From Octopus sinensis (Eukaryota), in the NCBI RefSeq assembly GCF_006345805.1, contig NC_043000.1:149296001-149360000 (forward strand): DNA of 64,000 nt. The letters are read 5' to 3'. Within the stretch, counting starts at the first letter, position 1; each line of letters begins with the position of its first letter. Positions 9,502 to 61,326 of the stretch are shown here, piece by piece. The translations under genes were made by a program, and so were the position numbers. The notes under the pieces are model-generated. The model was not told the origin of the DNA. It saw only the letters and a program-made list of their open reading frames with translations, and searched no databases.

Positions 9502-9596
9502 TATTTTTCTCTGATGATGGGGGCATTCTGAGAAAATGAATCTTAAGATTCATATATAATCTGGATGAATGTACCCCTGAGACGATCGTTGGAATA
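9502..9596 (+). ncRNA. Degenerate minimal type-I hammerhead ribozyme in PLE 3' end
   Basis: CUGAUGA-U-[GGGGGCAUUC...GAAUGUACCCC]-U-GAGA-CGAUCG-UU. Helix III is the palindrome ACGAUCGU; A14 is changed to G and stem I is weak. Confidence 0.6.
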
Positions 9597-9661
9597 CCTT
9601 ATTTTCCTCTAATATGTTACCCCAAACTATTTTTAATGCCTATTACTTTCTCTGTATTATA

Positions 9662-10077
9662 CTCTTTTACTCTTTTACTTGTTTCAGTCATTTGACTGCG
9701 GCCATGCTGTAGCACCGCCTTTAGTCGAGCAAATCGACCCCGGGACTTATTCTTTGTAAGCCCAGTACTTATTCTATCGGTCTCTTTTGCCGAACCGCTA
9801 GTGACGGGGACGTAAACACACCAGCATCGGTTGTCAAGTAATGCTAGGGGGACAGACACAGACACACAAACATATACACACACACTTATAATATATATAT
9901 ATATACATATATACGACAGGCTTCTTTCAGTTTCCGTCTACCAAAATCCACTCACAAGGCATTGGTCGGCCCGGGGCTATAGAGGAAGACACTTGCCCAA
10001 GATTCCACGCAGTGGGACTGAACCCGGAACCATGTGGTTGGTTAGCAAGCTACTTACCACACAGCCACTCGTGCGCC
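9662..10077 (-). mobile_element. SINE family A
   Basis: Homology to the other copies. Confidence 0.9.
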
Positions 10078-10451
10078 TATATTTAAAATTTTTAAAAACG
10101 TTTTTCTATATTTCATTATTTTTATCTATATTCTATCATTATTTTAGTATATCTATATATCTATATGTCCATGTATATTTTTAGTGTTCATATTTTCTTT
10201 ATTCTATATATTTATATTTCTAATATATCAAAATATGTTTCAAATTGGACATTTCTTATTTTATCCTAATTAAACCCGTATATATATATATATATATATA
10301 TATATATGTTCATCGTGGTCTGCCTGATTCGAGCATTTTCTATTGTATCTATTATACTTGCTTAGCGCCTCGGGGGTTCGACTTGAGCACTTCTACGCTA
10401 TGTTTTTCGAAATAAAATTATATAATAATAATAATAATAATAATAATCATG

Positions 10452-10790
10452 ATGATTTCTTTTACTTTCCACCAGGGCGAAGGATGAGGGGAACAATACA
10501 AAGACAGGCATAAAGTGTAGGAGTTTACATATGATGGAATGATTATTTTAAAAAATGTATACACGGTATACATTGGAAGAAGGGAAGTGTATACGACACT
10601 AGAAAAAATCATGGTTATAGGGCCTTCCTGATACAGAAAGAGCTCTAGGGATAATCGAGGAACCCCACCATCCAAGATCACTCAGAATACCGAGGACGAG
10701 TGCCCTCTCCAACACCATTCTTCTGATTCACAGGTCTACTTTTTAGCAACGGAGATCACCATATTGGCAGAAAAAATAGCTATTTCAACC
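10452..10790 (-). mobile_element. L1/Tx1-like LINE 3' end fragment
   Basis: Homologous to 42836..43400 (shared GAGGAACCCCACCATCCAAGAT and CTGA.TCACAGGTCTAC blocks). Confidence 0.6.
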
Positions 10791-11069
10791 TTTTTTTTAA
10801 TGAGCGAACTTCCCTTATTTATTCTTGTTTGATCTGAGGTATTATCTGCAAATAATTAGAGTGGAAAGACAAGAGATTTGACTTGACCTTATATGCCCAG
10901 ATGTCCACTAAATTGAATTTGTCTAGTTCAGAGATCACGTATTTGTTGACGATGAATATTTACTCTCATTCTTAAAGTGAGTTTAGTTTCTCTATTGCAT
11001 TTGATGGCATATTAAATTTTTTGAAGAACAAGCAAAATAGTTTCCACATTATATGTAATATCAAGCATA

Positions 11070-12483
11070 TTTGTGATTAAGAAGCTTACTTTGCAGCTAT
11101 GGAGTTTCAGGTTCAATCCCCCTGCGTAACAGCTTGGGTAGGTATCTTCTACTATAACCCCAGACCAACCAATGCCTTGTGAGTGAACTTGTAGACGGAA
11201 ACTCTGTGGAAGCCTGTCATATGTATGTATGTATGTATGTATGTATGTATGTATGTATGTATGTATGTATGTATATGGTAGCATGTTCTAAAACGCCCCA
11301 AATAGCATAATCCAGAACGTTTAGATCTGGGCTAGAAGGCGGCCATAAACATGATTCCAAAAAATGACTAAGTTTGGATTTGCAGAAATCTTGTATTTTT
11401 CTAGCTGTGTGGGCTGGAGCACCATCCTCCATCCATACATAATTACCAGCTGGGTAGTTTGCTTTAAGCCTTGGCAATACCCGGTATCTCAGAGTCTTTT
11501 AGTAAGTATTAACATTGATCTTTTCATCAGATTTGTAGAATTTTATAGGCATTTTCTTTCCATCGGAAACCACAACACCAAAAGCCATAACTTGAGCAGG
11601 ATGTTTTGTTTTGAATGTCCCCTTAGCCTCAGCTGTCGATTTTGCGATAAATCTGTCATTTCTGCGGTTCAGAACAGTCTCGACAGTGAAGATCTTTTCG
11701 TCTGAAAAGATCGTTACAATGGAGGACTTTTACTTGAACCAGGTAATAATTTTCTTGCACCTTTCCAATCTCTTTTCCTTCATAGCTGTTGTCAACAAGT
11801 GTTTTGGTGTTCTTATGTAAGATTTTAACCTCAAATCATATTTTACTGCATTTCTAATGGTGTTGTTGTCTACCTCAAGTTCAATTACCATTTTTCTCAT
11901 AGATTTGGTTGGATCCTTTAGGATTTGAGATTGGAGAGCTTTAATAAAAGCTTTGGTACGTTTTTTGTTGATGCCTCCACTTCCAGACTTCCTCGTAATA
12001 GTTTTGCTGATAGTCAATCTATTCTTTACATTATAAACAGTCTTTATGGACACTCCAACTATTCTTGAAATCTCCTTTGGTGTGACGAGTGCATTCAGCA
12101 AATCACACACTCTTTGAGGTTTGCTTTCCTGATTACTCATATGGGCAAAAGTTTCTGAAAAGATAAGGATAATAGTGTTAGGTATGATTATGGCATCAAT
12201 ATATGCTAGGTTTCAAAACAATTGATTTAGTGCCTGCTGAGAAAAATAACTTAACGTCCATTGTAAATTTTGCTTCCCCACCATGTATCATTGTGTCTGT
12301 ATTTGTCTCCTACTACTGCTTGACAAACGGTGTTGGTGTGTTTGCGTAACCAGCAAAAGAGAGCGATAGAATTAGTACCAGGCTTTAAAAATAAGTACTG
12401 GGTCGATTTATTCGACTAAAAATGCAAGGCGGTGCCCTAGCATGGCTGCAGTCTAATGACTGAAGCAAGTGAAAAGTAAAAGA
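11070..12483 (+). mobile_element. Diverged SINE family A split by a maT transposon
   Basis: 5' half at about 11070..11220, then (TATG)n; 3' half at about 12290..12483. Confidence 0.7.
11275..12285 (-). mobile_element. Tc1/mariner superfamily transposon, DD37D (maT-like), 3' truncated
   Basis: HTH N-terminus (ORF 11730..12140), FSDE, and DGA followed 37 residues later by the D of WPPSSPDLNVLD. Has in-frame stops; TIR abuts TA at 12286. Confidence 0.85.
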
Positions 12484-58920: not shown

Positions 58921-59139
58921 TATATGAATATATGTATAATATATATAAATATATATGTAATATATACATAATATATATAAATATATATATAATATGTATA
59001 TAATATATATAAGCATATATATAATATACGTATAATATATATACGATATATATATAAAAATATATATAATATATATAATATATATATAAATATATACATA
59101 ATATATATAAATATCTATGATATATATAAACATTTTTTT

Positions 59140-60330
59140 TTCTTCTCTAGTTTCAGCTCAGAGCTGCGGCCATGCTGATGCACCGCCGTTTTGTGCTACA
59201 CTGTTATTGCGAAGAACCTCGTCTAATATGTGGCACTTGGTGAAGAATGGAGTTTGATATAGCTACTCTCATTTGCACCTCTTGCCGTGAGGTAGGTTCA
59301 TCTGGGACTCTTGACAGGAAGATGTCCAGCTTTGATTTAAAAACTGCTACATCTACTTTGTGCAAGTTCCTCAGACTCTTTGGGAGAATATTAAAAAGCT
59401 GTGGGCCCTTGAAACCCAGGCTGTTGCAGAAGCTGGTCCTGAAGCGTGATGACATTGCTGGGATCTTTGGAACTATGCAGTGTCGTCCCGTTCTAGCATT
59501 GGTGTAGCTTACAATGCCAAAATTTGGTACAATTTCTTCCAGGATCTTCCAGACATATATTACTGCATACCTCTCCCGTCTTCTCTCCAGGGAGTAGAGT
59601 CTTAGCTGTTTCAACCTTTCCCAGTAACTGAGCTGTTGCAAAGAGACGATCTTTTTTGTGAATCTTCTCTGGATTGCTTCGAGGTCCGCTGTTAATTTTA
59701 CACTGGTGGGTGACCATAGCTGTGAGCAGTAATCCAGGCGGCTGAGGACGAATGTCCGCCAGAGGACCATCATGGTTTCCTTATCTCTGGTTCTGAATGT
59801 TCTTAGGATCCACCCAGCCAGTTATTATCCTCAGCCCATCTGTAGACTGAGTCCAACTCCTGCTGCAGGTGTGCAACATCGCTGGGGTTCTGTATTTTCT
59901 GCGAGACTTTCGTATCGTCTGCATAACTGGCCAGAGTGGCTATCCGGGCATTTGAGGGCGTATCTGAGAGGGCCACTATAAAAAGCAGTGGTCCCAAGAC
60001 AGTGCCCTGTGGAACACTGCTCACTATTTGTGTGTTCATAGAGGTGGCTCCATTAACCACTACTGCATGACTTCTATCTTTCAGGAAGTCATGTAACCAC
60101 ACTCCAAGTTTTCCAGCTATGCCGAGGTCACGTAGTTTGCGGCATATCATACCATGATCCACCTTGTCAAAAGCTTTTGCAAAATCAAGGTAGATTACGT
60201 CCACATTTGATTTGTTAAGTAACTGCCTCAACACCCAGTCATAATGTTGTAAGAGCTGGGTCAGGCAGCTCCTACCTGGTCGAAAACCATGCTGGGTATC
60301 ACTCAGCAAGTTATTTTCCTCAAGGAATAA
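59140..60330 (-). mobile_element. CR1-like LINE, 5' truncated, with internal deletion
   Basis: QHGFRPGRSCLTQL, YLDFAKAFDKVDH, PQGTVLGPLLF, YADD and LYSLERRRER; deletion near 59820. Confidence 0.9.
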
Positions 60331-60395
60331 TATATATAATATAATATATAATATATATATTATATATATATATATATATGTATAAATATATATTC

Positions 60396-60770
60396 GGTCA
60401 TGAATGACCAAGCGATTGCAACTAGAAATTTACCCTCCGAGGCACAAGTCTGGGCAAGGTTGTTTATGGAAGACCAGCAGTCGCGCACGCATACCAGCCT
60501 CCCCTCTCCTCGCCACCGATGTTATCCAAGGGAAAGGCAAAGGCCGATACAGCTTGGTACCAGTTACATCGCAGCTCCTTTATTAACGTGCAAGTGGCTG
60601 AGCACTCCACAGACACGTATACCCTTAACGTAGTTCTCGGGCAGATTCAGCTTGACACAGAGTGTGCCAAGGCTGGCCCTTTGAAATACAGGAAGAAAGA
60701 GTGAGAGGCAGTTGTGGTGAAAGAGTACAGCAGGGTTCACCCCACCTCTGCCGGAGCCTCGTGGAGCTTT
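60396..60770 (-). mobile_element. Chimeric SINE: family-B body joined to family-C 3' half
   Basis: 60583..60770 aligns to family B; 60396..60580 aligns to 37410..37570. Confidence 0.75.
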
Positions 60771-61281
60771 ATATATATATATATGAATATATATATATAT
60801 ATATATATCTATATATATATATATATATATATATATATATATATATATATATATATATATATATAGATGTATATATATATATATATATATATATATATAT
60901 ATATATATATATATTATTATATATATATATATATATATATATATATATATAATATATATTATATATATATATATATTATATATATATATATTTATATATG
61001 AATATATAAATGTATATACGCGTGTGTGTGTGTTTGTGCAATCATCAAAAAGGTAGAACTGTAAATTAGATGATTGCATGTATGTATGTATATATATAAT
61101 ATATATATATATATATATATATATATATATACGGGTGTGTGTGATTGTGTATAGAAGAATATATTAATAAAAGGAATTCCAACCTTGTCTGATTTTCACG
61201 TTTTATTTACAATCTTATAATGATATAAGGTAATATAATAAAATAAAATAAAATAATAGAATGTTAAATGTTCATTCTGAT

Positions 61282-61326
61282 TGAACTAGTACTTTCATGC
61301 ATTAAATTCTGCAATCTTCGGGTTCA
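61282..61326 (-). ncRNA. Minimal type-I hammerhead ribozyme (U4C core) 3' of PLE ORF
   Basis: UGAAC-CCGAAGA-U-UGCA(GAAUUUAA)UGCA-U-GAAA-GUAC-UA|GUUCA; helix III is the palindrome AGUACU. Confidence 0.7.

Follow-up and report, generated by a model that had tools for sequence, protein, structure and literature searches.

The 64,000-nucleotide stretch of the Octopus sinensis genome analysed here (the window; RefSeq assembly GCF_006345805.1, contig NC_043000.1, forward-strand positions 149,296,001 to 149,360,000) contains six motifs with the architecture of type-I hammerhead ribozymes. The data indicate that these motifs are very probably hammerhead modules from the 3'-terminal regions, derived from pseudo-long terminal repeats (pLTRs), belonging to Penelope-like elements (PLEs), which inserted in (TA)n microsatellites and are now mostly relics. 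We are similarly confident about the kind of PLE concerned, namely elements with a C-terminal GIY-YIG domain and a Neptune/Nematis-type CX4CxxC linker, with two of the modules still joined to defective open reading frames (ORFs) and four residing in 5'-truncated or short ORF-free copies. This reading is favoured by the excess of the motifs over chance, by their PLE and (TA)n context, and by their homology to other Octopus copies with canonical core boxes.

Architecture and frequency of the motifs

A preliminary description of the window had listed seven complete type-I folds. The sequences are found at all seven coordinates and, as determined by hand reading and then by script, the architecture is real in six of them; the site at 9502 fails, and only two of the six have an intact core. 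The modules, named here by position and strand, are 19115(+) at 19110-19153 (predicted cleavage after 19148), 35074(+) at 35068-35130 (after 35124), 38277(+) at 38273-38332 (after C38328), 35872(-) at 35840-35877 (after 35845), 57218(-) at 57179-57224 (after A57185) and 61321(-) at 61282-61326 (after 61287). The motifs at 35840, 57179 and 61282 are on the minus strand, the strand having been left unstated earlier. All six share a common layout: the 5' strand of helix I leads into a CUGANGA-like box and the hairpin of helix II, after which come GAAA, a short palindrome with A15.1 and U16.1 at its ends, H (any nucleotide but G) and the 3' strand of helix I.

The conserved hammerhead core has been described previously (PMC6155905). 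It is canonical in 38277(+) (CUGACGA) and 57218(-) (CUGAUGA), and each of the other four modules carries a single core lesion, specifically U4C in 61321(-) and 35074(+) (both CCGAAGA), a C inserted after U4 in 19115(+) (CUCGAAGA) and A6U in 35872(-) (CUGUUGA). GAAA and the downstream U-H are present in all six, with H being A four times, C once and U once. In keeping with a type-I three-way junction, in which helix I is open and helices II and III are closed, helix I measures 4-11 bp and helix II 3-7 bp across the set. Helix III is a perfect palindrome in 35872 (ACGU), 61321 (AGUACU) and 19115 (AGUAUACU) and is palindromic about one central nucleotide in 38277 (ACCAGUGGU), 35074 (ACUCAGAGU) and 57218 (AUCACUGUGAU). 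Helix III is thus palindromic or near-palindromic in every module. The proposal of PLE-type minimal hammerheads from several distinct families holds. An unpaired nucleotide between A9 and position 10.1 and a G10.1-C11.1 pair are both found in 35872; 38277 has the A9/10.1 bulge with an A-U closing pair, and 35074 has G10.1-C11.1 without the bulge and an extra U between 11.1 and G12. A 1x1 mismatch occupies the base of helix II in 57218, 61321 and 19115, a place at which the consensus of family 1 (see below) has U-A, as in the O. bimaculoides copy L010 106(-). From hammerhead biochemistry, core changes like U4C, an insertion after U4 or A6U should strongly lower cleavage, and we infer that the lesioned window copies are inactive.

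The motif frequency was assessed with two descriptors. The strict descriptor requires an exact CUGANGA, an optional unpaired nucleotide A9/10.1, a helix II of at least 3 bp, GAAA, A15.1...U16.1-H17 and a helix I of at least 4 bp, and its sole match in the window is 38277(+), with 0.06 sites per window expected from 100 dinucleotide shuffles. A first version that lacked the A9/10.1 bulge had no match in the window and was revised to admit it, following published traits of PLE hammerheads (PMC4209133). The relaxed descriptor demands a palindromic helix III, tolerates no more than a single edit in CUGANGA and lets at most one nucleotide stay unpaired on each side of helix II; it matched exactly the six sites and no other on either strand of the window. 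With this descriptor, dinucleotide shuffles yielded 0.10 sites per window when helix I had to reach 4 bp and 0.05 when it had to reach 5 bp, and none of 200 shuffles reached six. Reversing the sequence without complementing it gave no match in the window, compared with six in the forward direction, and none in 178 kb of related loci, compared with nine. As such, the frequency of the motif relative to shuffled sequence, proposed at the outset as a refutation test, lies far above the shuffles.

Structure predictions point in the same direction. For 57218, 61321 and the Octopus controls, minimum free energy (MFE) folds of monomers or dimers regain helices I and II together with a helix III between molecules. 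In cofolding predictions, homodimers joined by an intermolecular helix III come out 6-12 kcal/mol more favourable than two monomers. A covariance model (R1) was built from five Octopus hammerhead sequences from outside the window, two with the helix II interior pruned; family 1 dominates it. Its top three matches in the window are 19110 (36.6 bits, E ~1.5e-7), 61282 (31.0 bits, E ~5.5e-6) and 57180 (15.4 bits, E ~0.12). The helix II inserts of 31-32 nt in 38277 and 35074 prevent it from scoring these two. Cross-family MAFFT alignments intended for a general covariance model mis-gapped helices II and III and were discarded.

Association with PLE coding relics and microsatellites

Searches by blastx and tblastn with 332 retrieved PLE proteins identified five coding relics in the window, two of which are followed by a hammerhead module. 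Relic C (family 2; 33419-34873 on the plus strand, stop codon 34874-34876) is a single open frame that aligns with residues 202-677 of a 680-aa homolog and is therefore 5'-truncated; module 35074 sits 192 nt past its stop codon on the coding strand. Relic E (61753-63998, minus strand, with ORF 61750-62691) has its reverse transcriptase (RT) in frame -3 and its thumb, linker and GIY-YIG portion in frame -2, with one frameshift near 62862-62922 and a 5' end that lies off the window. It has a Pfam GIY-YIG domain with a C-x4-C-x2-C linker upstream, and its homologs, at 46-85% identity, are mostly bivalve PLE-like proteins together with Octopus fragments; among named proteins, those of O. sinensis and O. 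vulgaris come closest (79-85% identity). Module 61321 sits 424 nt past the relic E stop codon, again on the coding strand. Of the three modules originally placed 3' of PLE ORFs, those at 35068-35130 (192 nt) and 61282-61326 (424 nt) are thereby retained. The third assignment is not, as ORF 55562-56818(+) has an RVT_1 match but is matched by none of the 332 PLE proteins and lies on the strand opposite to 57218(-); searches of PDB and NCBIfam gave it no further classification. In summary, placement in a PLE 3' region is direct for 35074 and 61321, by homology for 19115, and by the anatomy of tail and (TA)n for 35872 and 57218.

The same arrangement is found in related loci (L001-L011) that were fetched by protein look-up. 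A hammerhead lies in the PLE 3' untranslated region (UTR) at the independent loci L003, L002 (two copies) and L004, to which the claim is confined; the nearest named proteins to the families of L002-L004, which come from metazoan assemblies in ENA, are from bivalves. Specifically, L003 carries GUAGC-CUGACGA-GUGGAAACAC-GAA-ACUUUAAGU-A|GCUAC, 30 nt past the stop codon and 36 nt before (TA)n, L002 contains two inverted PLE copies with a minimal hammerhead before (TA)n in each, and L004 has a hammerhead variant with an extra base at N7. Among the Octopus loci, L006 9644 and L009 16097 are canonical hammerheads with 8-nt palindromes, and L011 8565 is a hammerhead with A9U. L005 is the ortholog of L001 and was not counted as an independent copy, and the O. 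bimaculoides locus L007 is uninformative, its 3' UTR being masked by Ns.

Of 14 modules, 12 (four of six in the window and all eight elsewhere) have a (TA)n run of 8 or more units that begins 36-259 nt downstream, compared with a background in which 14.3% of window positions have such a run starting 30-330 nt downstream. The window modules with a downstream run lie 97-259 nt upstream of it; 19115 also reaches its (TA)n once a nested repeat of ~230 nt in its tail is discounted. The elements of 19115 and 57218 are bracketed by (TA)n. A (TA)n target bias is known for PLEs whose linker is of the CX2-5CxxC type (PMC8557442), and it explains the microsatellite neighbourhood without the need for a special type of module. 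The earlier observation that ORF-free modules adjoin microsatellites is accordingly borne out and accounted for by this bias: these modules are tails left by PLE insertions in (TA)n that are 5'-truncated or, possibly, short and non-autonomous. Most PLE hammerheads have likewise been described as solitary remnants of truncated elements (PMC4209133).

Families and individual modules

Family 1 comprises 19115(+) and 61321(-), which are homologous to each other and, over more than 100 nt, to O. sinensis/O. vulgaris L001/L005 (CUGAUGA) and to O. bimaculoides L010 486(+) and 106(-) (CUGAAGA). The two L010 copies lie on opposite strands and have a 5-bp helix II (UUGCA-UAAA-UGCAA). These canonical boxes in the Octopus homologs indicate that the family started canonical and that its two window copies decayed. 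Module 61321 (61282-61326, minus strand) reads UGAAC-CcGAAGA-UUGCA[GAAUUUAA]UGCAu-GAA-AGUACU-A|GUUCA. Besides U4C and a disturbed helix II, it shows a deletion of 2 nt after which helix III is still palindromic. Its 150-nt tail (61132-61281, minus strand), with 78% identity to O. bimaculoides L010 480-669, leads into (TA)n at 61100-61131. Module 19115 (19110-19153, plus strand) reads GGGAC-CUcGAAGA-CUGC UUUAA UGCAA-GAA-AGUAUACU-A|GUCCC, and its helix I differs from the other four members of the family by two compensatory double changes. The whole 5'-truncated insertion spans 19066-19572 on the plus strand, from (TA)n at 19066-19083 through the module and a tail to ~19243, a nested unrelated repeat (~230 nt, ~19243-19474) that splits the tail, and the remainder of the tail, which resumes at 19469-19555, to (TA)n at 19551-19572; L010 122-206 matches 19469-19555 at 88.5%. 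In the alignment of the five members, pairing in helix I is 100%; both partners differ in two of the pairs (GGGAC/GUCCC versus UGAAC/GUUCA), and no pair has changed on one side only. The helix III palindrome survives the 2-nt deletion, and sliding the partner columns drops pairing from 90% to 17-45%. Stem covariation, the other refutation test named earlier, therefore exists, resting on one sequence in one family.

Family 2 is represented by 35074(+) (35068-35130), which reads AGAUAA-CcGAAGA-GAUG[...]CAUC-U-GAA-ACUCAGAGU-U|UUAUCU and has an extra U before G12 in addition to U4C. The family-2 tail occupies 35131-35296 on the plus strand, with (TA)n at 35230-35249 and 35269-35296. An O. bimaculoides homolog, L010 12615(-), has CUGAAGA at the position of the CCGAAGA in the window, and the related PLE in L003 carries its fully canonical hammerhead at the equivalent 3'-UTR position. 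With homologs of families 1 and 2 canonical elsewhere, the lesions of 61321, 35074 and 19115 look like post-insertion decay. An identical T-to-C change, turning CUGAAGA into CCGAAGA and creating a CpG, is seen in the two unrelated PLE families (61315-61321, minus strand, and 35074-35080, plus strand), and the C inserted in 19115(+) falls at the corresponding spot. Judged from the sequences, the recurrence of U4C probably reflects independent decay hits; CCGAAGA was also considered as a functional core variant and set aside as the main explanation, since homologs of both families carry CUGAAGA.

Module 35872(-) (35840-35877) reads UCUUU-CUGuUGA-A-GAGC GUAG GCUC-GAA-ACGU-A|AAAGA, with the A6U lesion, an unpaired A between 9 and 10.1, the G10.1-C11.1 pair and the perfect ACGU palindrome. 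Behind its 97-nt tail (35743-35839, minus strand) comes (TA)n at 35695-35742, and on the 5' side of the module there is a (CA)n/(TG)n run (~35914-35982); the element as a whole is ~200 nt long and ORF-free. An O. sinensis paralog at L009 13351-13458(-) has CUGUUGA in common with 35872 at 84% identity, within different flanks; it has additionally lost G12, and its 5' boundary is similar. As the A6U is common to two independent insertions, their source copy probably had it before both.

The two modules with intact cores have no adjacent PLE ORF. Module 38277(+) (38273-38332) reads GAGU-CUGACGA-G-ACAUCCA[17 nt]UGGAUGU-GAA-ACCAGUGGU-C|ACUC; its helix I has 4 bp and its helix II 7 bp, and a G is left unpaired between A9 and 10.1. 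An inverted repeat at 38227-38295 (self-BLAST of 38230-38295 against 38292-38227, 84% identity) ties its 5' part head-to-head to a degenerate minus-strand partner (GAGUCUGAUGAGACGUCCAC at 38249->38230) in which the 3' strand of helix II and the GAAA/UH region have decayed. Paired minimal hammerheads on opposite strands have been reported for PLEs, and schistosome PLE hammerheads show head-to-head pairing (PMC4209133); the inverted repeat fits both this dual opposite-strand pattern and that of an inverted truncated copy. Module 57218(-) (57179-57224) reads GGCCUG-CUGAUGA-U-UAC GUAA GUA-U-GAA-AUCACUGUGAU-A|CAGGUC, with a U.U mismatch at the base of helix II and a helix I that is extensible to 11 bp (57174-57229). 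Its tail of ~260 nt (56916-57178, minus strand) is followed by (TA)n at 56872-56915, and a TA-rich compound microsatellite adjoins its 5' side (from 57225), so that the ORF-free element of ~310 nt has (TA)n on both sides.

Interpretation and alternative explanations

The published PLE family suggests how such modules might act. In the transcript of a live element with two copies (pLTR-ORF-pLTR or a partial tandem), the palindromic helices III of two units would pair to form a double hammerhead, which, by analogy, would cleave after H17. Self-BLAST around each site and both descriptor scans revealed neither a same-strand tandem pair nor a second same-strand copy of any family nearby. Nothing in the window therefore points to cleavage of dimers in cis, to a retrozyme organisation or to circular RNA, and the earlier suggestion of retrozyme-like elements and circular RNAs is not upheld. 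Given the lack of same-strand copies, the four damaged cores and the defective ORFs, the locus is a graveyard of PLE tails and not a source of self-cleaving or circular RNA.

Several observations weigh against the assignment of the six motifs to PLE hammerheads, and some of them would suit the view that short boxes merely co-occur by chance in AT-rich, microsatellite-rich DNA, as they do at the rejected site 9502. The canonical CUGANGA box is missing from four of six modules; the relaxed descriptor was composed after the sites had been seen; and a search that allows one core mismatch with no palindrome demand gives 4 sites against 1.83 expected, which is not above chance. The covariation is thin, with five sequences, both double changes in one of them, and 40 of 500 shuffles equalling it. 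For 38277, placement in a PLE 3' region is not established and a downstream (TA)n is absent, and neither 38277 nor 57218 has a homolog in the ~178 kb of related sequence or an adjacent PLE ORF. The Rfam hammerhead models, furthermore, gave no match in the whole window at the gathering threshold and none among the best 150 of 229 matches at E <= 10, nor did local searches of 111-201 nt around 57218 and 38277 at E <= 10. However, a canonical O. sinensis hammerhead used as a positive control (L006 9644) is likewise missed by Rfam at E <= 10, so the models are insensitive to the PLE-type subclass and their negative result weighs little. The post-hoc nature of the relaxed descriptor is a minor concern in view of the ~60-fold margin and the independent evidence. 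Against six observed sites, chance provides ~0.1 and the reversed control none, which refutes it for the six sites as a set; three modules have homologs in other Octopus loci with canonical boxes, and the placement relative to PLE ORFs and (TA)n is fixed. Chance co-occurrence is thus an extremely improbable account of these motifs.

It is also very unlikely that the modules are still at work as self-cleaving parts of non-autonomous, retrozyme-like elements and now yield cleaved or circular RNAs from this locus, even though two cores (38277 and 57218) are intact, the elements of 35872 and 57218 are ORF-free and ~200-310 nt long between microsatellites, 35872 has a paralog with a similar 5' boundary, and non-LTR retrozymes have been argued to stem from PLE pLTRs (bioRxiv 10.64898/2026.07.22.740005). 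The defining feature of metazoan retrozymes is a tandem array of 150-450-bp repeats (PMC7229834), and such a head-to-tail organisation is not seen in the window, where tandem or neighbouring same-strand copies are lacking and the nearest same-strand pair is 3.2 kb apart and of different families. Moreover, four of six cores are damaged, and an even-length palindromic helix III is unable to fold stably in a monomer. A less remote, if still doubtful, alternative is that the fold is kept for a putative non-catalytic role, for instance as a folding or recognition element for the PLE RT-endonuclease near the start of reverse transcription, such that core lesions are tolerated and able to spread. 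It would suit the presence of A6U in two independent insertions with different flanks (35872(-) and L009 13458(-), 84% identical) and the preservation of helices I and III by compensatory change while the box is hit. Catalytic mutants of an anole PLE hammerhead insert normally in vitro and its cleavage needs protein (PMC11167929), and Naiad PLEs thrive without canonical hammerheads (PMC8557442). Only two copies back the shared lesion, however, and families 1 and 2 are canonical in other copies, with lesions that look post-insertion. The reading of the six motifs as mostly decayed PLE modules is therefore preferred over all three.

Comparison with known systems

The modules resemble the PLE minimal hammerheads of Cervera and de la Pena 2014 (PMC4209133), which are characterised by an unpaired nucleotide after A9, a long helix II, a helix I of 4-5 bp, a palindromic helix III and opposite-strand pairs. 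Shared features are the type-I topology, the CUGANGA/GAAA/U-H core in two window copies and the Octopus homologs, a helix I of 4-6 bp, the unpaired A9/10.1 nucleotide (38277 and 35872), a 7-bp helix II (38277), a helix III that, being palindromic and very short, implies action as dimers, and the location at PLE termini. In both cases, the copies are mostly solitary with some opposite-strand pairs, and sequence diversity is high with compensatory changes. The window modules differ in that four of six have a core lesion, helix II often begins with a mismatch (U.U, C.A) instead of G10.1-C11.1, and the host is a cephalopod. Further small hammerhead variants have reportedly been described by Lunse et al. 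in 2017.

According to the part of Craig et al. 2021 (PMC8557442) that cites Arkhipova 2006, a (TA)n target bias marks Neptune/Nematis-type endonuclease-positive (EN+) PLEs. Reading of the domain and linker in ORF 61750-62691 likens the window elements to this type, with a C-terminal GIY-YIG that has cysteines inside its core and is preceded by a CX4CxxC linker; further common points are a hammerhead close to the 3' end, (TA)n-bracketed insertions and inverted truncated copies. Unlike in such PLEs, no pLTR direct repeat is visible in the window, because the elements are truncated or run off it. With metazoan non-LTR retrozymes (de la Pena et al. 2020, PMC7229834), the modules have in common type-I hammerheads with a weak helix III, a presumed action as dimers, low GC and a likely PLE origin, as well as the U.U mismatch at the base of helix II that is also found in the axolotl HHR_Amex2 (PMC7229834). 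Retrozymes, in contrast, form tandem arrays of 150-450 bp with loop1-loop2 tertiary contacts, whereas the window copies are solitary with no evident loop-loop contacts.

PLE minimal hammerheads were described across Metazoa in 2014 (PMC4209133) and in very large numbers since. A full-text literature search pairing hammerhead ribozymes with Octopus found no description of such motifs, so the window motifs are new members of a well-known kind. As such, they add cephalopod examples to the very large set of Penelope-associated minimal hammerheads, with the same anatomy as in other animals: a hammerhead, a tail of ~100-260 nt and then (TA)n. Some microsatellite-flanked ORF-free modules in octopus-like genomes can thereby be understood as 5'-truncated PLE tails. 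The Rfam 15 hammerhead models are blind at E <= 10 to canonical minimal hammerheads of the PLE type (38255-38365; L006 9600-9740), and annotation pipelines will consequently miss this subclass.

The one mildly surprising point is the A6U core common to two independent insertions. Published PLE hammerhead activity is low and maybe protein-assisted (PMC4209133, PMC11167929), and it is dispensable for insertion in vitro (PMC11167929), with which the common A6U and the retention of helices while the box decays are in keeping. To judge from these two sequences, it is conceivable, though unlikely, that the ORF-free ~200-nt lineage of 35872 multiplied with a presumably dead hammerhead core. If so, the fold would serve a task other than cleavage, such as that of a folding or recognition element that works with protein assistance in PLE reverse transcription; another option is that the PLE protein may rescue cores with U6 or C4.

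Other features of the window

At the rejected site 9502-9575 (plus strand), CUGAUGA is followed at a distance of 14 nt by GAAA+A and a perfect palindrome of 18 nt (AUGAAUCUUAAGAUUCAU). The palindrome is one base out of register owing to an extra A after GAAA, helix I is missing, and helix II could be formed by wobble pairs only. No version of the descriptor matched the site, its MFE fold lacks helix I and is not a hammerhead, R1 aligns only 'helix I + CUGAUGA' there (12.8 bits, E ~0.7), and it is 704 nt to the first (TA)n downstream.

The remaining PLE relics are A (7515-8649, plus strand), which occupies three reading frames and hence contains at least two frameshifts, B (10793-11011, minus strand), a C-terminal fragment only, and D (51084-52638, minus strand), in one frame. 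The descriptor scan found no acceptable hammerhead in the 3' flanks of relics D and B. Directly 3' of relic D, where a hammerhead tail would be expected, lies a C-rich low-complexity stretch (50500-51070, minus strand) with no hammerhead in it. Near relics D and B, R1 gave weak matches (E ~1-2) at 50081-50046(-) and 10625-10652(+), which contain CUGUUGA...GAAACAGCUGU and GAAAGAGCUCUA; lacking helix II or box 1, they were not accepted as hammerheads, but they may be further decayed remnants. The RVT_1 ORFs 55562-56818(+) and 59803-60411(-), neither with similarity to the 332 PLE proteins, are presumably relics of non-LTR retrotransposons, and an ORF at 22500-23237(+) with mariner-type Transposase_1 and helix-turn-helix (HTH) domains is a DNA-transposon relic.

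Among the non-coding repeats, what looks like an abundant element resembling short interspersed elements (SINE-like), ~410 bp long, is present in at least six copies at 90-95% identity (9668-10078, 46730-47137, 182-594(-), 2291-2693, 24081-24623(-) and 27805-28355(-); two copies are each in two pieces). Foldbacks at 19617-19805/19838-20026 and 37802-38051 have arms of 98% and 93% identity that contain TGATCCGGTTCTTGACTGAAGA and flank microsatellites; the CTGAAGA within these arms belongs to no hammerhead. A near-perfect hairpin of ~100 nt and ~60% GC (47984-48089) shows, on both strands, sub-threshold matches to several unrelated microRNA families; its probable identity is that of a palindromic repeat or a miniature inverted-repeat transposable element (MITE). 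Finally, a 193-bp segment occurs three times (57687-57879, 11780-11972(-) and 58415-58607(-)), its 99% identity indicating a recent duplication or a young repeat.

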